The notes: generated from the sequence alone by a model not told the origin. A stretch of DNA of 64,000 nucleotides from Dicyema japonicum (GCA_011109175.1 RDEW01000009.1:640875-704874), one strand, 5' to 3'; shown: positions 6,127 to 59,854, numbered from the stretch's first letter. A program made the numbers and translations.

Positions 6127-6445
6127 GCGTGGCGCCATGTGGTGCTTCGTGGCTAATTGGCTGAAGTTTCTGTTTGTTCGTCCGTTCCTCCTCTCTCTTC
6201 CTATTAGAGTGGCGTCATGTGATCCACCTGTTTAGGTGGCGCCGAGTGCAGACCGGCACGAAAAAGGATCATTTGCTCTCCCCCACTCCACTGGAGGGGT
6301 TTCTACAACTGCAAGTATGGACGTCTTACCCATTATGTTGATTCAGGATGGTCTCTGTTTCTGTAGAAGTGAAAACTGGATACACTTAATTAGTTGTTTA
6401 CTTTAACTTCTTTCTCGGTGTATCCGGGGTTAATAAATAATAATT
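6127..6445 (+). mobile_element. Short non-autonomous retroelement, family A (ribozyme-like motif plus LINE-type 3' end)
   Basis: Colinear and highly similar to 23000-23320 and to 58561-58783 (reverse); ends CCGGGGTTAATAAATAATAAT. Confidence 0.85.
6211..6271 (+). ncRNA. Candidate HDV-like ribozyme motif
   Basis: P1 GGCGTC/GGCGCC, P2 TGATCC/GGATCA, P3 ACC/GGT, P4 TGC/GCA, J4/2 CGAAAAA. Confidence 0.55.
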
Positions 6446-11619: not shown

Positions 11620-12170
11620 ACACGAGCCATCAGCTTTCTTTGCCCGATGTTCCTCTCTCGATCCCACACATGTACGTATCGGGGACTTGTCTGGAGAGGT
11701 ACTTTGAGTCACCCCGAAATTTAGTCGCATGAGGATTCCAAAGGAGTCGGTCCGGATCCATGTTCTCCACAAGTCCATCGCTCCGTAATTCTGAACACCC
11801 TCTTCTGCATTTCCTCCACTTTTCTTTTATTTATATAAGATGGAAGGTCCTCACGAAGCGCATGCATATGAGATACATGGCTCGATGTACTGCTTGTATA
11901 TGTTCTTCAATACTGGGTGGGTACCGACCTTCCATATTCCAGGTCTTTAGAATATTAATTTTCCATTCGCATTTTGTGAGAATATTTTCAATATGAGGTG
12001 ATGAACAAAGTGCATATCAAATATCACTCCCAATATCCTCTGACATCTGTTGAAAGGGATATCGTCCATGTCTACCTTCAAGGTGACTGTCCTCTTTCCC
12101 AATCATTTGTCCGAGGTGAAAAGGGAAGTGATTGACTCTTCTGCACTCATCCTAAGCCGGTTTTCTATTA
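11620..12170 (-). mobile_element. Ingi-like LINE post-RT fragment
   Basis: Nucleotide homology to 30715-31000 (CCCTTTCAACAGATGTCA, TCTCATATGCATGCGC). Confidence 0.65.
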
Positions 12171-17264: not shown

Positions 17265-18300
17265 ATTATTATTACCCCCAGGATCACTGGGTCAAAGAGA
17301 AAGAAATAAAAGTTCTCATCTAACTAAGTGATCCCAGACCGACAAAGGTGAGGACGAGTCCGGCGGGGTCGAGAATCCTGAACAGCTCTTCTCATTGGAC
17401 ATGGCTTCGGCTCAAAATTTTTGTATGATTGTAGATAATTCGATAGTATTTGGAATAGAGGGCAGCTTGGTAAAACAGCCTCCTTTAATAATTTTCGTTG
17501 TAGTTCAATTAAAAAATTTTCAATAGGTTGGATATTGTGATCTGGTCCAATTAACCTTATTGCAGTCTCCTCGATTGCAGATAATTTCAACATGTGGTAC
17601 TTGGACGAATGAACTATTGGGAGTCAATTAAACAATGTATTTGAATATCTAAGAAGACTAATTCCCAACTGAAGATCTTCGGGCTAACACTGAAACGGCA
17701 AATTGAATGGATTCTATCCTTTCCTCGTTCCGATATATTATTCCCAACGTACAGGCCTCGGAGACTTCAACATACCAGCTTAAATTACTTAACGTCCCCT
17801 TTCAGAGGGGTTAATCAGCAACTCCTTTAAAGCAAAAGAGCGACTTCCAAAGACGGCATTCGCACCTCTAGGAAAACTGAACACACCTAAGGGAAGTTTG
17901 TCTAAGAATACTTCTTCTGAGGGATGCCCAGTTAACCTAAAACTAATCCACATACTCCACATATCTTGTTTTTTATACTCCACGTATCTTGTTTTTGAGA
18001 ATGCAAGATCAAAGTCAAATCGATCAAAGTCCTTTTTCCATTCGCCTACCGAACGTTTTAAAAACGTTAAATTTGATATCCATGGCTAGCGAGGAACAAC
18101 TTCACTTCTTCATTTGCAGGCTGGGCATTTGCTACAATGCAGATCTAAGATTGCTGATTGCTGAGAGATCCAAGGAGAGAGGCGGATAGATCAATGAAGA
18201 AAATGGTAGCAGAACGTAACAGTGAAAAGTGGACGCTCACAGGGATCAGACATATGAATCTGACGTGGAGAGAAAATTAAAGGAGGGTCGAGAAAAGAAA
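17265..18300 (-). mobile_element. LINE 3' portion with (AAT)n tail
   Basis: ORF 17324..17593 ends RSGIT*, followed by the shared 3' UTR and GGGGGTAATAATAATAAT. Confidence 0.65.
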
Positions 18301-18609
18301 AAAATGTGTCCATATGGTCGTTGATATACTAGGAAGGACACAGTTCGATCATCCAAATTTATTCATATACTATGTCGTAAAAATATAGAGACCACAGTGG
18401 ATACAAACTAAATAGACTCGAACCTTTCTGGCTATATAAGTTCTTTTTCCATCAATATTCGGCGACTGATACCCGAGAAGTTTGCTGAAACCTGGGATGG
18501 TATTTGTTGTTCATCATAGGCTGTGAGTTGGGTGATCAAGCGTTTTACATTTATCAAGGAATTGTTGACCGACCATGAGGAAGTGGTGATCTAGAAATTT
18601 CAATATTAT

Positions 18610-18900
18610 TATTATTAAAACCAAAAATCACCGACAAATTAAATAACTACATAGCTGCCAAGTGATTCCGGCTGCCTCGAATAGCCATCTCATTCTTGCT
18701 CGGTGTTCCTCCCGGGTTCCGACGCATTTCCGGATTAGGCGTGGGTTTCTAATTTTTTTGGGGGTAGTAAGGCTCCGGTTTTCCTCACTAATTCCTCAAA
18801 TGGTGTAGGGTTTAGAGGTGTCTGGGAAAACTTTTGTAGAGCCTTACTGGCCATTTTTTGGAATGTATTGATTAAATCTGAGAATAGCAAATTGTCGTAA
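18610..18900 (-). mobile_element. Ingi-like LINE 3' end
   Basis: GAACACCGAGCAAGAATGAGATGG...GCCGGAATCACT, homologous to 47270-47360. Confidence 0.65.
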
Positions 18901-22999: not shown

Positions 23000-23320
23000 A
23001 AGCGCCATGTGGTGCTGCGTGGTTAATTGGTTGAAGTTTTCTGCTTGCTTGTCTGTTCCTCCTCTCTCGTCCTATTAGAGTGGCGTCATGTGATCCACCT
23101 GTCTAGGTGACGCCCAGTGCCAGGGCCGGCATGAAAAAGGATCATTTGCTCTCCCCCAATCCACTGGAGGGGTTTCCACAACTGCATGTAATGGACGTCT
23201 TACCCTTTATGTTGATTCCGGATGGACTCTGTTTCTGTAGAAGTGGAAACTAGATACACTTAATTAGTTGTTTACTTTAACTTCTTTCTCGTGTATCCGG
23301 GGTTTAAAAAAAATAAAAAA
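23000..23320 (+). mobile_element. Family A short retroelement; ribozyme-like motif at 23082-23144 with C-to-T at the putative catalytic position
   Basis: Colinear with 6127-6445. GGCGTC/GACGCC, TGATCC/GGATCA, ACC/GGT, TGCC/GGCA, then TGAAAAA. Confidence 0.85.
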
Positions 23321-24862: not shown

Positions 24863-26214
24863 ATGTCATTATGGGGAAAACTGATAATATGCTGGAGTCT
24901 AAACAAATTAGTGTTAAGTGATTCAACAACAAGGAAAATTTCATCAACACCTTTCACCACTATAAAAAGTTCAAATAATTCTTCTGCTAAGACAGGTTTG
25001 TAAGTTTTAACAACTTATATTTTAGTCAGTAGTACCAAAAACTCAAAATCTAGTTACTCTCAATATACTACAAAAACGAATTCGAATAAAACTACTACTA
25101 CATCGATAACTTTACCAAGCAGTTCGAAGAGAGGTAATTCATCAAAACCACATACTCTTCCAAATTCATCGATTTCTAGTTATTCTACTACCAGGAAAAT
25201 TTCATCAACACCTTTCACCACTATAAAAAGTTCAAATAATTCTTCTGCTAAGACAGGTTTGTAAGTTTTAACAACTTATATTTTAGTCAGTAGTACCAAA
25301 AACTCAAAATCTAGTTACTCTCAATATACTACAAAAACGAATTCGAATAAAACTACTACTACATCGATAACTTTACCAAGCAGTTCGAAGAGAGGTAATT
25401 CATCAAAACCACATACTCTTCCAAATTCATCGATTTCTAGTTATTCTACTACCAGGAAAATTTCATCAACACCTTTCACCACTATAAAAGTTCAAATAAT
25501 TCTTCTGCTAAGACAGGTTTGTAAGTTTTAACAACTTATATTTTAGTCAGTAGTACCAAAAACTCAAAATCTAGTTACTCTCAATATACTACAAAAACGA
25601 ATTCGAATAAAACTACTACTACATCGATAACTTTACCAAGCAGTTCGAAGAGAGGTAATTCATCAAAACCACATACTCTTCCAAATTCATCGATTTCTAG
25701 TTATTCTACTACCAGGAAAATTTCATCAACACCTTTCACCACTATAAAAAGTTCAAATAATTCTTCTGCTAAGACAGGTTTGTAAGTTTTAACAACTTAT
25801 ATTTTAGTCAGTAGTACCAAAAACTCAAAATCTAGTTACTCTCAATATACTACAAAAACGAATTCGAATAAAACTACTACTTCGAACTCTTCTATTTATT
25901 CAAGCTCATCACAATCTTCTACGAATTTTACTACTATTTTTACGCACATACCTACCAACACATCAAGTACCCTAAAAAAGTTAAATACTTCCATTATTTT
26001 TCATACGACAAATTCTACTTATTCTTTAACTTATTTCGAGAATCTTTTATCGTCATCTGATTATCTACTTTCCGAGTTGGATTATTTTAATGTTTCTTTT
26101 TTATCCAGTATATATTATACTGTTTTTGTTATTATCAGTGTTCTAACTTCTTATTCTGTCTCTCTTTATTTTATTTTTGATTATTTAAAAAGTATGCATT
26201 TTAATCATTTTTAG
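24863..26214 (+). CDS. Secreted or membrane-anchored Ser/Thr-rich mucin-like protein with tandem exon repeats
   Basis: Signal-like MSLWGKLIICWSLNKLVLS; 77-aa S/T-rich repeats; hydrophobic C-terminus (FLSSIYYTVFVIISVLTSYSVSLYFIF) and TAG at 26212-26214. One A is missing in unit 3 at ~25485. Confidence 0.75.
24932..25880 (+). repeat. Tandem repeat, ~3.6 copies of 261 bp, each containing a 30-nt intron
   Basis: AGGAAAATTTCATC starts at 24932, 25193, 25454 and 25714; units are nearly identical. Confidence 0.95.
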
Positions 26215-29699: not shown

Positions 29700-31030
29700 T
29701 GAACAACTTAATAAAATTCCAAAATTTCACACAAGAAGTTCAGGAAATCGGATACACTATTATCACTCAGAAAACTGAAGAAAGTGTCAGAGCCGCAGTT
29801 CTCAGAGAGATGTGAGGGATACTCTATATTCCGCAAAAAACAACATACTCTTACGGACCAGACAACATTCCGGTTATTCTATTGAAAAATCTTGGAGATG
29901 AGGAAGTTACTTTTATGACGTCGATTTTCAATTATTCGATTAACCAAAATGTGATACCGTTATTATGGACCAGGCACTAAAACGGCCAATACTGAAACCT
30001 GTAAGACCAAAAGATGACCCAGCGTCTTTTAGACAGATATCATTACTACGTTCTATTTCAAAAATCCTGGAGAGGCTTATTCTCAGGAGAATAAAAGAAT
30101 TCTTACCAGAGAGTCCTTTTCAACACGGATTCAAAAAAAATGAGAGAACCACATTTACAGTTACAAACATTGACCGTGTATATTCGAGTCGGATTTGCAA
30201 ACAAGCCAAGCCGAGACATTTAAAACAGTGCTCTGCTCGATCGACATACACAAAGAATTTGACTCAGTGTCGAGAAAAATATTTCAATCAGAGATCCCAG
30301 GGAAGCTCAGGTTTTTGATCACCAACTTCTTAAATGAACGAAGAGAACGTGTATGCCTCGCAGAATCGAAATCCATCTCACGTCTGCTCCCGAACGGAGT
30401 CCATCAATTATCTCCTTCATCCCCTGCTATGTTTAACCTCTTACTGGCCAATCTCCAGACTCTCGAATCTGATAGTGATGTTATACTCTTTTATAATGAT
30501 GATATTGTTTTGGCTACGCGAGATCTGAAGATCCAAAGGCCAAAGAAAGAATACAAATTAACCTGGACCAGCTTAACGCCTGGATAATGAAAAACCGGCT
30601 TATGGTGAATGCAGAGAAGTCGTCTACGCCCCTTTTACCTTGGACAAAATATAAGTTTTGGGTGAAATTAAAAGATTGGAAAAAAAGACAGTCACCTTGA
30701 AGCTAAGCAAGGTCGACATCCCTTTCAACAGATGTCAAAGAATCTTGGTGTGATACTTTGATATGCATCTCTGTCTGACATCACACGTAAAAAACATTCT
30801 TTTGAAATGCGAGAAGAAACTGAACGTATTAAAAAGTTCATCGGGAGTGGTACTCACCCGGTCCTGGTGAACGTATACAGACAGTTCATCGAACAATGTT
30901 TCTCATATGCATGCGCCTCGTGGGACCGTCCATATCTTGGACAAATATGATAAGATCGAGGAAATGCAAAAGAGGGCTTTCAAAGTAACGGAATGCTGGA
31001 TTTGTGGAGATCACCGAACCGGAGTGATGC
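29700..31030 (+). mobile_element. Degenerate Ingi-like LINE (RT and post-RT)
   Basis: SYGPDNIPVILLK, FRQISLLRSISKILERLI, PFQHGFK, SIDIHKEFDSV, YNDDIV. Confidence 0.8.
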
Positions 31031-31737: not shown

Positions 31738-33400
31738 TTATTTGTTGATTACTGAAATAATATAAAAAGTCGGGTCCAGTCTGAGGATATGTCCAAATAG
31801 TCGCCATCTCGATAAAATAACATCGGTGCTGAGTGGTCTGGATTTACATCGTGAATATAGATTTTCATTTGAGATTTTTCTCGGCCAAAAAATTCCAATC
31901 AACATGCGGAGTTGGTTCCTGTGAAAAGTATCTAGCTTCTCTAAATCAATTTTAGAACATGCCCATGTTCCGGAATTGTATAGCAAAATTGGTTTAACAA
32001 ACGTGTCGTATAGTCTGACACGAAGATTCAGTGATACATGTTTTTTCCTTATCTAAATTTGGTACATTTTTTTGAAGTATATGGTAATCAGCATTTTCCT
32101 TCGACAAATATCCTCAGCATCACCTAGCAGTGAGCCGAGTTTTTTGGTATGTCTCCAGCACTCATCGTTCCTTGATTCTGCTCGTTCGACTCGTGTATAA
32201 TCAGTTTTTTTAATGTTTATGCGTAAGTCCCAATTCTTAAAAATACGTTCGGCTTGAAGTAAAATTTGGTCAAGTATTTCTTGGTCGGTAGACACAAAGT
32301 CTACATCATCCGCATAAATTAACTCTGTTATGTCCCGGTATTTAGGACCCATGACATTTCTCAATTCCTTGAGCGCAGCTTCGAGGTAAACAATAAATAT
32401 AATTGTGGACAAGGAATCTCCTTGTGGAGTGCCCATGTTGGTACTGAAACTCTTCGACTGCTTTGTTCCTATTCTCACGGATAGGTCAGTTTCGGAAAGT
32501 AATAAACTTATTAGTCTCAGGCAGTCCTCGTCAAGCAGTTCCTTTAGAACAATCATGAGTTTTTCTCTATTGATGCTGTCAAAAGCCTTCGTTAGATCAA
32601 TTCCTAGGATGTATATTACTTTCGTGTATTTTTGACATATTGATGTGAGCCATCGATGACTCCACACAATATCTGAGGTTGATCTTCCACTTCTAAACTC
32701 ACTTTGACTTAGGGAAAGGTATTTTTCCACTGGCTCTCGTATACGGTTAAGCACTATGATCGATAAGGTTTTCCTGATAACTGACAATAGAATAATAGGT
32801 CTTAGTCTGTCCAACGACCCTTCTTTTTTCCCAGGTTTATGTATTGGAATTAAGACTCCATGTCCCAAAGGAAGTGGACAGTGAAGTTCCATCGACTCAT
32901 TTAAGATATTCGTGATTATATTCCCAACAGTAACCGGGGTATGTTTTAGTAACTCACCTGGAATGCCATCATAACCAGCCGACCGATTTCCCTTTAGATG
33001 CATAAATGCATCGGTTACTTCCTTTATTGTAATTTTGTTTGTAAGGGGTCTCGGATATCCAATAAATTTAGGTACATTCATCCCTTCAGATTTAAACAAC
33101 GACTCGAAGTGTCTAGCAATATAATTTGCTTTATCCTCAGGGTTTTGAAGATATTGACCTTCGTCGTCACAGACTTTTAGTGGTTTCTTTGCAGTTCCTC
33201 GTATAAGTAGTCTAACAGCAGAGAACATTCGTCTTCCATACTGACAGTTTTCGATTTCAGTTGCTTTATCGTCCAAATATTTGTGCCAAAGGATATTTGA
33301 TCGTCTTCTTATCAGATGCGATATTTGATTGCGTTTTCTCCTTAATGCACATTTATTCGAATTTGAACTTCTCAGTTTCGAACGTATTTCTTTAAGAGAA
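31738..33400 (-). mobile_element. RTE-clade retrotransposon reverse transcriptase, nearly intact
   Basis: 407-aa ORF with GYDGIPGELLK, RPIILLS, IDLTKAFDS, GTPQGDSLS and YADD. A single in-frame TAG at 32053-32055 (conserved IW position), then LYNSGTW...RWRLFGHILRL in the same frame. Confidence 0.92.
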
Positions 33401-33420
33401 CTGTATTCAATTATGTTCCC

Positions 33421-33985
33421 TTGTTAAGAGAACTGTATTCTATTATGTTCCCTAATCATAACTTGGTCATTTCTCTCCAAAACTGAGTTTAGGTACCTTT
33501 TTTCCTTGTCTGAGACCTTATTTAATATAACCTCCATACTAGATTACGTTGAATAATTCTCTTAATATTTAGATCGATTATACGCTAATAAACATATGTA
33601 GTTATAACAGGTTTATAAGTATTACTTAAATTTTAATCATTAAGACATTATGTGGTTCATCTGTCCAAGGAGATGACATTCATGCCTGCATACAAAAATG
33701 ATATCTCTCTTTCCTACTCTACTAGAGAGTTTCCACAACAATTGATATTGATGAGAGTGATGCTAGCCTCACACTGGGATCAATAGTTAGTTGAGGACTC
33801 TCTTTTCCTTTAACTCGGTGATCCTGGAAATAAATATTTTAGTTTATTGAACCAAAAAACCACCGTCAAATCCAAAATAATAAAATTCAGGTAATCCCAG
33901 CCTCCCTCAACAGTCTCCGCATCTTTTCTCGGTGTTCGACTGCGTTTCCGATATGGACGGGGTCCGCATACTAGAGTCCTTCGCA
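33421..33985 (-). repeat. Inverted near-identical duplicate of 47210-47784 (LINE 3' end plus promoter and exon 1 of the synaptotagmin-like gene)
   Basis: Reverse complement matches 47210-47784 with a few substitutions and indels, including a 10-bp deletion. Confidence 0.92.
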
Positions 33986-34110
33986 AATGTCGATTTTGTA
34001 ACGGGATAAATCTTCGGATAATAGTTCCCTCTTGATCAGAGATGAGAGGCCACGAACATTGTATGTGGCGATGGAAAACAAGGATTTTACATTTAGACAT
34101 GATAAAGACA
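33986..34110 (-). mobile_element. RTE APE N-terminus
   Basis: SIATYNVRGLSSLIKRELLSEDLSRYKIDIC. Confidence 0.8.
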
Positions 34111-34287
34111 TGAATTTTTCTAGAGAAGAAAAACAGAAGCACGTCACCACTTCAACCAAAATTATAAAAATAAGTGCAAAAGTAATTCCTAATTTAAGGT
34201 CCGAATTTGACAAATCATAATAATTTTTATATTTTATTAAAAGCGAAAATAATATAATTTAAATATTTATTAAATCCACTTTGTGGA

Positions 34288-45826: not shown

Positions 45827-47400
45827 CCCGTCCATATCGGAATGTGATGGAAAACGTGTTGGTGTCCGGAGATTTTAATGCCAAGCACCCTTCGTGGTAT
45901 GAGAAACAACCTCCAGACATAAGGGGACTTCATATCTCCCAATTAGAAAATCTGTCCACTATGAACTACCCAATTAGGAATACACGATCCCCGTATAATA
46001 CCAAGGATTCGGTTACATCACCGGATATTACGTTATGTTCACCACGGCTTGCTCCGCTTATATGCTGGTCTGTGAACTGACTTACGAAGCGACCATAATC
46101 CCATTCTGATCAAGATCAATTGTACACCAATGACGCGGTCAAAACACATTATTTTTTATGACTATATTAATGCTGACTGGACAAGATTCAGAAGATATGT
46201 GGATTCGGCCCTGCGTCCAGACAAGAATCCTAGAAAGGATAGTTATGATACTCACGCGACATTCCCTCCCGGATGCCAGATTTCAGCATGGTTTTAAAGA
46301 GGGACGATCAACTATCACACACCTACCTACATTAAAGAAGTTCATAGAAAATGGCCTTAACAAAAGACCATGACAGAAAAAGACGATTGTATGCTCAATT
46401 GATATCCAGAAGGCTTTTGACTCAGTTTTGAGGAAAATTATCACGCACAAGATATATTCGTCGAACATTGACGCAAACCTGAAATTGTGGTTGGGAAATT
46501 TCTTGAGTGGCCGACGAGGACGAGTACACTATGGCAATCGATGTTCCGTACCGAGACTATTAGCAAAGGGCGTTCTTCAGGGCTCCCCATTATCTCCTCT
46601 CTTGTTTAACGTTATGATGGATGACTTGCCACTCCCTCAGGGGGACAATGACATATTATTAACGTATGCTGATGATATAGTCATTGCCTCGAGGGATGTG
46701 AGTATTGTGGAGGCAACTGAATAATCTAAGTTTATGGCTTTAGGAAAATCAATTGACTGCTAGCCCGGAAAAGTCGGTGTTGACCCTATTCACGACAAAC
46801 AGAAGACTAGGGAAAGTATCAATTGACGTCACACTGGATGGGAAGATTATCCTTCAAAACAATTACCAGAAAATCATGGGAGTTACCTTTGACACCTTCT
46901 TAACTTTTACAAAACATGTCGAAAATATGTTATTGACTTGTACGAGGAAAATCAACTTCCTGAAGGCGTTCTTGGGAAACCTAAGAGACAAAAAAGGTCT
47001 GAGTAATCTGGAGGTCATATACAAACAGTTCATCGAGGCTACAATAGGATACGCATGTAATATCTGGGGATCTAACCTTTCTGCAACGAATTTGGACAAG
47101 ATATGCAACATTCAAGTGAAGGCAGCAAACCTACTAAGGAAATATTCCAGAGTGAAATTCTGCCAAAGAAACCTAGAAAATATGATAGAGGCGACTGGAA
47201 CAGTGCTTCTGCGAAAGACTCGAGTATGCGGACCCCGTCCATATCGGAAATGTGCAGAAACGCAGTCGGAACACCGAGAAAAGATGCGGAGACTGTTGAG
47301 GGAGGCTGGGATTACCTGAATTTTGTTATTTTGGATTTGACGGTGGTTTTTTGGTTCAATAAACTAAAATATTTATTTCCAGGATCACCGAGTTAAAGGA
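45827..47400 (+). mobile_element. Internally deleted Ingi-like LINE (APE part, RT, 3' end)
   Basis: GDFNAKHPSW, FQHGFKEGRST, IDIQKAFDS, GVLQGSPLSPLLF, YADD; ORF ends LREAGIT*. Confidence 0.85.
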
Positions 47401-47667
47401 AAAGAGAGTCCTCAACTAACTATTGATCCCAGTGTGAGGCTAGCATCACTCTCATCATATCAATTGTTGTGGAAACTCTCTAGTAGAGTAGGAAAGAGAG
47501 ATATCATTTTTGTATGCAGGCATGAATGTCATCTCCTTGGACAGATGAACCACATAATGTCTTAATGATTAAAATTTAAGTAATACTTATAAACCTGTTA
47601 TAACTACATATGTTTATTAGCGTATAATCGATCTAAATATTAAGAGAATTATTCAACGTAATCTAGT

Positions 47668-49050
47668 ATGGAGGTTATATTAAATAAGGTCTCAGACAAG
47701 GAAAAAAGGTACCTAAACTCAGTTTTGGAGAGAAATGACCAAGTTATGATTAGGGAACATAATAGAATACAGTTCTCTTAACAAATTAACTGTAGAAAAC
47801 TTCAGAAAGGATTATTTTTATCAAAAACATTGATTATAAACTTTTCTACGAATACGATATGTTGTGAAATATGCAGGTGGTTCTCCGATTCAAAGAGAAT
47901 GATATATTGTTCGAAATGTGGAATTCTTATTTGCCAAAAGTGCCATCAGAGTATCTCCAAGTCAGGAAATTCTGAGATTTGTCACTGGTGCTACATGTAT
48001 TGCGTGAATGAACATTTTAGAGAATTCAAAAAAATCATGAAATGGCATCATCAATTTAGAAATATTTCATTCCGAAAATTATATTTTGGTATTTTTAGTT
48101 TACGGTAAACGAATAGTTGGAGACAATCTCGTCAGCATGATTGGGGACACTGAGAATGCTAACATTAAAAAGTTGTTTTGAGGGAGGAGTTTAGTGAACA
48201 ATTTTTGAAAAAATATGTTAATAAAATGAAAATGAAAGCTACAAAGAAATATAAGAAAGTTGATTCACAGACAGCTGAAAACGATCAGAACGGAGGCATT
48301 TATTTGAAATTAAAATATGACAAAGATGCAGAAAAACTAAGAATTTACATAAATCAAATCGAGGAACCACCAAGTGGCAAAGTTAGCCAATGGAATGCAG
48401 CCATAATTTTACTCCCCGACGTTGATAATTCAACCAAAGTCAAATTCAAATTAAACGATAAAAATAAAAATTTGCCTGACAAGTTTATTGAAGTTTCAAT
48501 TGTCTAATCAATTTTAAGTATCACGTGGCCGAATATCAAGTAAATTCTATGAGTGTCTTTATTCAATTCACAGCTAAAATGCTATGGAAAAGTCGAATTG
48601 TTTATTCTACAGAGACCCATGTTGCTATGGTAGAAAATAACTTACAGTACTGGGCTCCATTTCAAAAAAATGTAAAAATTAATTACCTAATTTGGGCTAT
48701 TTCGAAATCTCAATATGCTTTAAGATTACGTCTCATGGTATCAATTGAAGAAGAGAAATTTACGATTATCGTAAATTCTCTGTTTGGTATGAAAGAATCA
48801 AAATCAACGTGCTATAAAATTATTTTGTAATATTAACTTAAAATCTAGAACCGCTAACAATTCTATTTTGGAGGGTCAAAGAGATATACTTGGAAAGAAG
48901 TGGATTATTTTTGATGAAAAGTTTAAATTTGGAAATTACCCCAAATATGAGAAAATCGAAGTCGATATTCTCAGAGTGAAGGGAGTGAAAACAGTAATAT
49001 CAAGGGATCTAATTGAATTAAAGAAAAGTCAGGGTTTATTTAATTTATAG
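47668..49050 (+). CDS. Synaptotagmin-like / rabphilin-like Rab effector (Rab-binding helix, Cys-rich zinc finger, tandem C2-like domains)
   Basis: Exon 1 MEVILNKVSDKEKRYLNSVLERNDQVMIREHNRI; 24-nt intron at 47772-47795; CEIC..CSKCGILICQKC..ICHWC; GGIYLKLKYDK C2-like strand; stop at 49050. Confidence 0.75.
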
Positions 49051-58516: not shown

Positions 58517-59854
58517 ATGATTGGCCCAATTTTTGTTGTTATCCTTTTACTTTTTAATTACTTTATTTCATTTTTATTATTTTTATTTATTTATTAACCC
58601 CGGATACACCGAGAAAGAAGTTAAAGTAAACAACTAATTAAGTGTATCCAGTTTCCACTTCTACAGAAACAGAGTCCATCCGGAATCAGCATAAAGGGTA
58701 AGACGTTCATTACATGCAGTTGTGGAAACCCCTCCAGTGGAGTGGGGAAGAGCAAATGATTTTTTTTCGTGCTGGCCTGGCACAATTATCCCTTTAAAAA
58801 TGATGATTATTATGGAATCGAATGGAATATTTTTATAGGAAAATACAGTTAAATTAATTTTCACTTTTTACCGATAAATAATATTCTGATTTAGAACTCG
58901 CAGTTAGAGAAGCTATTTTCATTGAAAAATTAAGATTTATTGAAACCCACAATTTACTCTTCAAGCGAGGAAAATTTATGTATGATTGGAATTAATCAGT
59001 TTGCAGACATGGTTAATTTATAAAATATTTTTGTAGACAAAAATAGAAATTAGCAAACCAAACAAATTCAATAATTATTATGATACACTCGACGAAGAAT
59101 TATTTGAAGATTATACAGTGGGAGAAAATGAAAAAAATACCCTAAATCTTTAAATTGGGTAAAACGAAATTGTGTAGCTGGGATAAATAAACAAGGAGGT
59201 TCTTGTGGTTCATGCTATGCCTTTGGAGCAGTTAACGATTGTTTAATGCATTTAGTTAGCTACATTGGAGTCACATTTGGCAATCAAACACAATATACTT
59301 ATATCTATGAGCGAAGAAGATATAATTGATTGTTCAAATAACCATGGGTGTTCTGGAGAAAATGGCCAAAAAGTGTACGAGTATGTTAAAAAACCGAGGA
59401 ATTAATTTTGGAAAACGATATCCATATAAAGGAAAGGTATTTTTTACAAATTATATATAGAAGGGTATATGCAAATATAAGGGTCAATCGGATATTAAAT
59501 TTAATTTGACTGGATATAGAATTCTTAAAAATGGTGATGAAAATACGCTTTTGCGAGTTCTTGTGAATTATGGTCCTGTTACTGTTGCTATAATGGCTCC
59601 TAAGAGCTTTTGCAATTATCAGCGAGGTAGATACAAATGAAACTTTTTAGGATATTTAGTTACAAAGATTATTCGAATTCTAAAAATAACCATTTGATTT
59701 CGGTTGTAGGTTATGGGATTACAAATGGAACAAAGTATTGGCTCTTAAAGAATGGATGGAAAAAAAGATGGGAATGTCTGGCTACATTAAATTGGAACGC
59801 GAAATGAATAACAGCGGAATTCCTCGCCAAGGAATTTTTCCAATAATCGAATAA
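58517..59854 (+). pseudogene. Cathepsin L-like cysteine protease, disrupted
   Basis: Signal MIGPIFVVILLLF; prodomain REAIFIEKLRFIETHN and GINQFAD; QGGSCGSCYAF, NHLISVVGYG, YWLLKNGW. Retroelement in exon 1, CCG in place of CAG at the first acceptor, and an in-frame TAA. Confidence 0.8.
58561..58783 (-). mobile_element. 5'-truncated family A copy with a 5-bp TSD
   Basis: Reverse complement matches 23117-23310; AATTA at 58556-58560 and 58784-58788. Confidence 0.88.

Follow-up and report, generated by a model that had tools for sequence, protein, structure and literature searches.

A host exon copied into a decaying RTE-type retrotransposon of Dicyema japonicum, possibly by a local template-switch patch

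The locus described here lies in a window of 64,000 nt from the genome of Dicyema japonicum (GCA_011109175.1, RDEW01000009.1:640875-704874), with a GC content of ~36% compared to 36.7% for the genome of the species (PMC6736024). On the minus strand it holds two parts of an RTE-type non-LTR retrotransposon, a short 5' remnant and a reverse transcriptase (RT) region. The 5' remnant (33986-34111) was identified by tblastn and translation, and it comprises an ATG at 34111 and the initial ~42 codons of the APE (endonuclease) domain, followed by a TAG just past the junction. Positions 34078-33986 match amino acids 1-31 of the relative P0031 and amino acids 11-42 of P0035 in tblastn, and both relatives carry the domains Exo_endo_phos and RVT_1. 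The match to P0031 resumes only at its residue 351, in the RT, so that ~319 amino acids (~0.96 kb) comprising essentially the whole endonuclease and the linker are missing; the removal of the APE domain had been correctly recognized in a preliminary description of this DNA. The element thus has an RT of the non-LTR type, as judged by RVT_1, and an ORF that opens directly with an APE-type endonuclease, of which only the first ~30 residues survive.

The linker and RT region (32056-33393, minus strand) is an open frame that retains the YADD motif and shows 42-53% identity to 120 relatives. Within it, the Pfam domain RVT_1 (E=5e-29) is contained in a 407-aa ORF at 32053-33276(-). This ORF is closed by a premature in-frame TAG (32053-32055) at alignment position 457, a tryptophan in 48 of 48 relatives. 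Beyond the stop the same frame continues for another 92 conserved residues (31777-32052, with 50-60% identity to 88 relatives in BLASTP), and in tblastn residues 82-616 of the relative P0003 correspond to 33369-31777. Because the TAG sits on an invariant tryptophan column and conserved sequence continues in frame behind it, the 407-aa ORF misses the conserved C-terminus, which amounts to ~170 residues. Homology ends at 31777; the last ~75 amino acids of the relatives were absent past this point in tblastn, and a tail search found no tail there, so that the 3' end of the element is not intact. The inferred full length of ~3.2 kb would be compatible with RTE. An 18-nt in-frame GT...AG segment of six codons (32048-32065, minus strand) spans the premature TAG, and on a pure reading of the sequence its removal could in principle drop the stop, but also the invariant tryptophan column.

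In an alignment with 48 relatives, with the TAG read as X, the chimera departs from the consensus at 12 of the 125 columns with a conservation of 85% or more. This corresponds to 9.6%, compared to 4.9% for the median of the relatives and 25.7% for the most deviant one. The element shows no frameshift over 1.6 kb. The RTE copy is young yet already broken, and its RT part is most likely a pseudogene. BLASTN found no sister RTE copies at the DNA level in the window. A large protein collection yielded 247 relatives of the RT at E<=1e-10, the closest of them about 53-57% identical, and held no near-identical protein and no gene model. The best named relatives of the region 32056-33399(-) are from Octopus sinensis (53-57%) and Elysia marginata (42-48%). 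Dicyema japonicum is a parasite of the cephalopod kidney, and RT relatives from a cephalopod and a sea slug may provide a lead for the sharing of a LINE lineage between parasite and host.

A compact host gene is located on the plus strand at 47668-49050, and its start (47668-48088) was delineated by frame analysis. From the ATG the native frame reaches a TAA at 47779-47781, and the sole GT before this stop is found at 47772. Together with the AG at 47794-47795 it defines a predicted in-frame intron 1 of 24 nt (47772-47795) that separates exon 1 (47668-47771) from exon 2 (47796-48088), and two more predicted introns of 28 nt (48089-48116) and 23 nt (48172-48194) follow. Two longer versions of intron 1 were ruled out: a 34-nt version, ending at the next AG, runs into a stop, and a 63-nt version would remove residues that are covered by a match to the Pfam profile FYVE_2. 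The predicted lengths agree with the literature, where a median intron length of 22-27 nt and signals reduced to GTa...AG are given for Dicyema japonicum and for myxobolid myxozoans (PMC13644364). Intron 1 opens with GTT, so that not even this weak preference for GTa is present at its donor.

For the profile searches the exons of the host gene were queried separately and not joined. The translated native sequence 47668-47778, which is exon 1 with the first 7 nt of intron 1, gave a sub-threshold match to positions 2-30 of FYVE_2 (E=0.089, 13.4 bits versus a cut-off of 27.2). FYVE_2 represents the Rab-binding domain of rabphilin and Slp proteins, and the match falls on its N-terminal helix. Exon 2 encodes a putative cross-brace zinc finger and returned weak, generic zinc-finger matches only, including weak PDB hits of the FYVE/PHD/RING type, and no Pfam hit to a C2 domain was obtained in the downstream host ORFs. 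The label 'synaptotagmin-like', which goes back to the preliminary description, is plausible, but unproven.

Directly upstream of the host gene, and on the same strand, is a degenerate LINE (45826 to ~47395), here termed LINE-B, in which Pfam recognizes Exo_endo_phos_2 and RVT_1. It consists of APE and RT pieces, an ORF tail and a 3' UTR, with the ORF split among several frames. Its 3' end was set by the similarity to another copy at 18250-18800(-), which fades after ~47395. Further degenerate copies of LINE-B are found at 29965-30923(+) and 11638-12165(-), and one of these copies lies ~0.85 kb beyond the end of the RTE homology at 31777.

The two parts of the RTE element are separated by a segment, 33421-33985(-), that is a copy of 47210-47784(+), with 97.4% identity over 576 columns, gaps included, in a BLASTN search of the window. 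A repeat finder returned the inverted arms 33421-33748/47457-47784 (328 nt, 100% identity) and 33749-33937/47269-47457 (189 nt, 99% identity), and a global alignment agrees with both. The duplication, claimed in the preliminary description and borne out by all three methods, is far beyond chance, and in the BLASTN search it was the sole pair of such kind in the window outside of repeat families. No further local patches were seen in the window, only three small or medium-sized tandem duplications and SINE-like repeats. The former are an array at 24917-25881 with a period of 261 nt and ~3.7 copies at 98-99% identity, a duplication of about 115 nt at 1565-1794 (95% identity) and one with a period of 73 nt at 2825-2946 (96% identity). 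The latter are short interspersed copies at 6132-6443, 23002-23316 and 58574-58783 with 90-93% identity.

At its left edge the segment 47210-47784 is crossed by an unbroken LINE-B ORF (46744-47316, an ORF tail of 191 codons), and at its right edge the host reading frame passes 47784 into the zinc-finger exon. Because it is continuous with both flanks, whereas 33421-33985 interrupts the RTE element, the former is the original and the latter the copy. The donor measures 575 nt and the copy 565 nt, and the two are inverted to each other with their arms 13.3-13.7 kb apart. The copied segment spans a LINE-B tail, host upstream sequence and the whole of exon 1, and ends 13 nt into intron 1. It is unspliced, and its start lies in the non-genic LINE tail. 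Of the 458 nt that precede the host ATG, ~270 nt are host-specific and ~185 nt belong to the ORF tail and 3' UTR of LINE-B. Host upstream DNA is indeed present in what the preliminary description termed a captured promoter, but the first ~185 nt of it are the tail of another LINE.

Six differences, substitutions and indels, distinguish copy and donor in the global alignment. They are located at donor offsets 6, 12, 37 (a deletion of 10 nt), 54 (a 1-nt deletion), 116 (a substitution) and 247 (a 1-nt insertion), all within the first 250 of the 575 nt on the side of the 5' junction, with four of them within 55 nt. Variants specific to the copy are thus both deletions, near 33950, an A at the position equivalent to 47326 and an additional A at 33749. 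In a Monte-Carlo test this clustering near the 5' junction is significant with P=0.007 for the maximum and P=0.0005 for the sum. Such a gradient is the pattern expected if an error-prone polymerase was primed at the 5' junction.

Next to the copy, at 33392-33420(-), a second copy of donor positions 47753-47781 can be read, 29 nt long and with one mismatch. A junction duplication of ~30 bp had been proposed before; it is present, and this second copy, or stutter, is its exact form. In the multiple alignment RTE homology begins only at the lysine codon 33393-33391 directly after the stutter. The residue preceding this lysine is a glutamine in every relative that covers the stretch (about 20 of the 48 aligned), but a leucine in the chimera, and further upstream no ungapped similarity to the relatives is found. 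As the ungapped similarity starts exactly at the lysine, the glutamine is replaced and the sequence upstream is unmatched, the second repeat unit is best read as a stutter copy of the donor. A gapped resemblance to the relative P0016 had prompted a different reading, in which 33420-33392 is native RTE sequence and the end of the host exon would derive from the RTE; this was rejected, as the ungapped homology breaks exactly at the lysine and the shared glutamine is missing. At the 5' junction the motif TGCGAA is common to both sides, corresponding to a microhomology of 3-6 nt if the native RTE sequence is taken from relatives with 40-50% protein identity, and the residues I-C encoded there agree with P0035. 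At the other joints, two of the three junctions, the microhomology is 1-2 nt, the native RTE sequence again being deduced from distant relatives. At least three template switches are thus readable, the 29-nt re-copy included.

We consider this arrangement to be a patch in an RTE copy that was resident and dying, generated by microhomology-mediated template switching or templated insertion as in MMBIR/FoSTeS or synthesis-dependent repair, and assign a probability of about 0.5 to this reading. We infer that the template was DNA, and that the steps occurred in the following order. An RTE copy would already have been resident on the minus strand at ~34150-31777 when a break or gap took out ~0.96 kb, corresponding to virtually the entire endonuclease domain plus the linker. 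The gap would then have been filled from 575 nt on the opposite strand, 13.3 kb away. To this end the free 3' end at the endonuclease stump may have annealed via the 3-6 nt of microhomology, and synthesis would have begun in an error-rich manner before it faithfully copied the LINE-B tail, ~270 nt of host upstream sequence and, from the Rab-effector-like gene, exon 1 with 13 nt of the adjoining intron 1. Subsequently synthesis would have fallen off and re-copied the last 29 nt once, and the new strand would have been joined to the far side of the break at the lysine codon of the RT linker.

A local, DNA-templated patch is favored because the donor is 13.3 kb away and inverted, because the captured piece is unspliced and has a non-genic start, because at least three switches took place and because the differences are crowded at the 5' junction. 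The donor is retained intact at 47210-47784. For a donor chosen independently of the acceptor in a genome of ~67.5 Mb (PMC6736024), the chance of lying within 14 kb would be about 4e-4. Templated insertions that show microhomology and repeated switching are well established as a class of events (PMC8421209, PMC11293582, PMC7954356), and they share with the present locus a nearby inverted donor, short microhomology, more than one switch, a deletion of acceptor sequence and point errors crowded near a junction. The known cases are mainly from human disease, cancer and yeast, while here the event concerns a retrotransposon in the genome of a parasite with ultra-short introns. Against a DNA patch it must be held that only 1-2 nt of microhomology are found at two of the three junctions, and that the sense orientation of the patch with respect to the RTE, together with the template jumping of non-LTR RTs, fits an origin at the RNA level equally well.

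In such an RNA-level scenario the RTE RT would have left the RTE RNA at the linker for a sense transcript that extends through LINE-B into the host gene, and after a single stutter and the copying of 575 nt it would have returned to the RTE RNA at its 5' end. The plus strand indeed carries LINE-B as well as the host gene, and stutter and low microhomology suit end-to-end jumps of an RT. Double jumps between templates have been described for LINE reverse transcription (PMC2104539), as have U6/L1 chimeras (PMC4476161), and these products share with our locus the sense fusion to a LINE 3' part and the scarcity of homology at the joints. They do, however, contain processed cellular RNAs whose source can be any part of the genome, and they show target-site duplications, whereas the capture observed here is unspliced, partly non-genic, only 13 kb away and internal to a LINE whose own 5' end is restored. 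An unspliced piece starting in the ORF tail of another LINE would require a read-through pre-mRNA, and the return jump would have to reach the same RTE RNA ~0.96 kb upstream. Moreover, the RTE 3' end is missing, and the donor distance of 13.3 kb is left unexplained at the same odds if capture and insertion site are independent. Unspliced donor and proximity would favor a DNA over an RNA template, and we regard the RNA-level origin as rather unlikely.

In 3' transduction, read-through of an L1 element carries along its downstream flank. The segment does have the anatomy expected for this process, in that it opens inside the LINE-B ORF, passes the 3' end of LINE-B at ~47395 and extends 390 nt into the flank, a host exon included. 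Accordingly, a 5'-truncated LINE-B with its downstream flank, i.e. host upstream sequence and exon 1, could have retrotransposed into the RTE with a target deletion of ~0.96 kb, and the microhomology at the 5' junction is in line with this. There is, however, neither a poly(A) or simple-repeat tail nor a target-site duplication at the junctions, the insertion is inside another LINE with a large deletion of the target, the source is degenerate and has its ORF scattered over several frames, and the proximity of source and target remains unexplained, so that we hold a transduction to be quite improbable. An artefact of assembly or amplification, with a chimeric molecule built into the consensus, is to be considered as well. 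Chimeras from strand-displacement amplification are typically inverted, local and joined by microhomology, and an inverted nearby donor with microhomology at the junctions resembles them; in addition, small indels account for three of the six differences and might be errors of the consensus. The presence of two junctions plus a stutter, of collinear RTE sequence on both sides and of a 10-nt deletion and substitutions relative to the donor speaks against such an origin, as does the fact that the window contains no N gaps and that a random chimera should not dominate the consensus. We judge an artefact to be improbable.

The patch brings host and RT coding sequences into proximity. The copy of host exon 1 (33434-33537, minus strand) is identical to 47668-47771 and comprises 34 codons and 2 nt, beginning with the ATG at 33537-33535. 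Of the native splice sites only the donor, at 33433, is kept, and an AG at 33402-33401 is supplied by the stutter copy. Host and RT frames are identical and broken only by a TAA at 33426-33424, which would be removed in frame with a candidate GT-AG intron of 33 nt (33401-33433). The predicted fusion would consist of 34 host codons, a split codon and 448 RTE codons, ~483 amino acids in total. Host ATG, 33-nt segment on the native donor and in-frame continuation into the RT had all been described before and are correct as far as the sequence is concerned. Further AGs are found 14, 44 and 63 nt from the donor, and only one falls within 18-35 nt. Because the donor is fixed and there is a single AG in the usable range, spliceability in frame is an accident of ~1/3.

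The preliminary description had interpreted this arrangement as a young chimeric gene that produces a host-driven RT. Here the copied host upstream sequence would act as a promoter, and splicing of 33434 to 33400 would yield a ~483-aa protein with a Rab-binding-type helix and an endonuclease-less RT. Retention of the native donor, the AG at 33 nt, the in-frame join with no stop for 448 codons and the YADD motif can be cited in its favor, as can the ultra-short introns with minimal signals known from this organism (PMC13644364) and found locally with 24, 28 and 23 nt. The candidate intron does, however, exceed all three of these in length. The RT ends on a nonsense codon at the invariant tryptophan column with loss of the conserved C-terminal region, and its deviation at the conserved columns is raised. 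With a copy at most ~1% diverged from its source there was no time for selection, and the large protein collection holds no corresponding entry. With the truncation, the 12 deviating columns out of 125 and a LINE tail in ~185 of the 458 nt upstream, the claim of function lacks support and is to some extent contradicted, and a working gene is the least supported of the rival readings, one that we consider very improbable. The coding capacity is incomplete, as it depends on the predicted 33-nt splice and the RT is cut by the TAG, and any fusion protein would be devoid of the C-terminal third of the polymerase, which is conserved. The locus makes a weak candidate for a new gene. The in-frame arrangement of host exon and RT is most likely an accidental by-product, and a chance template-switch product, the alternative already raised in the preliminary description, fits the anatomy of the junctions best.

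A bolder version would have gene and intron born in one and the same repair event, as part of a genome-wide patching from nearby templates, with the intron made by the stutter from retained donor and duplicated AG, letting the copied host promoter and the Rab-binding exon drive the endonuclease-less RT fragment; this we hold to be just as doubtful as the working gene itself. In the classical AGGT-duplication model an intron is gained by tandem duplication of a segment with splice dinucleotides. The logic here is the same, as a GT from the first copy and an AG from the second, about one period apart, yield a candidate intron. Unlike in that model, the motif is AGT, so that the segment equals the period plus 1 (33 nt versus 32 nt), and the intron is a predicted one. 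Domesticated endonuclease-less RTs such as telomerase and the rvt genes are old, conserved and intact. A likeness to them, an endonuclease-less RT domain with a host-derived N-terminus, exists on paper only, as the RT described here is nonsense-truncated, very young and unconserved.

If the locus represents real DNA, it is a clean and very young multi-step template-switch patch, in which donor, acceptor, stutter and error gradient are all readable within a single window. Its value would then lie in providing a snapshot of the accidental birth of fusions between exons, promoters and domains of transposable elements, and of candidate introns.
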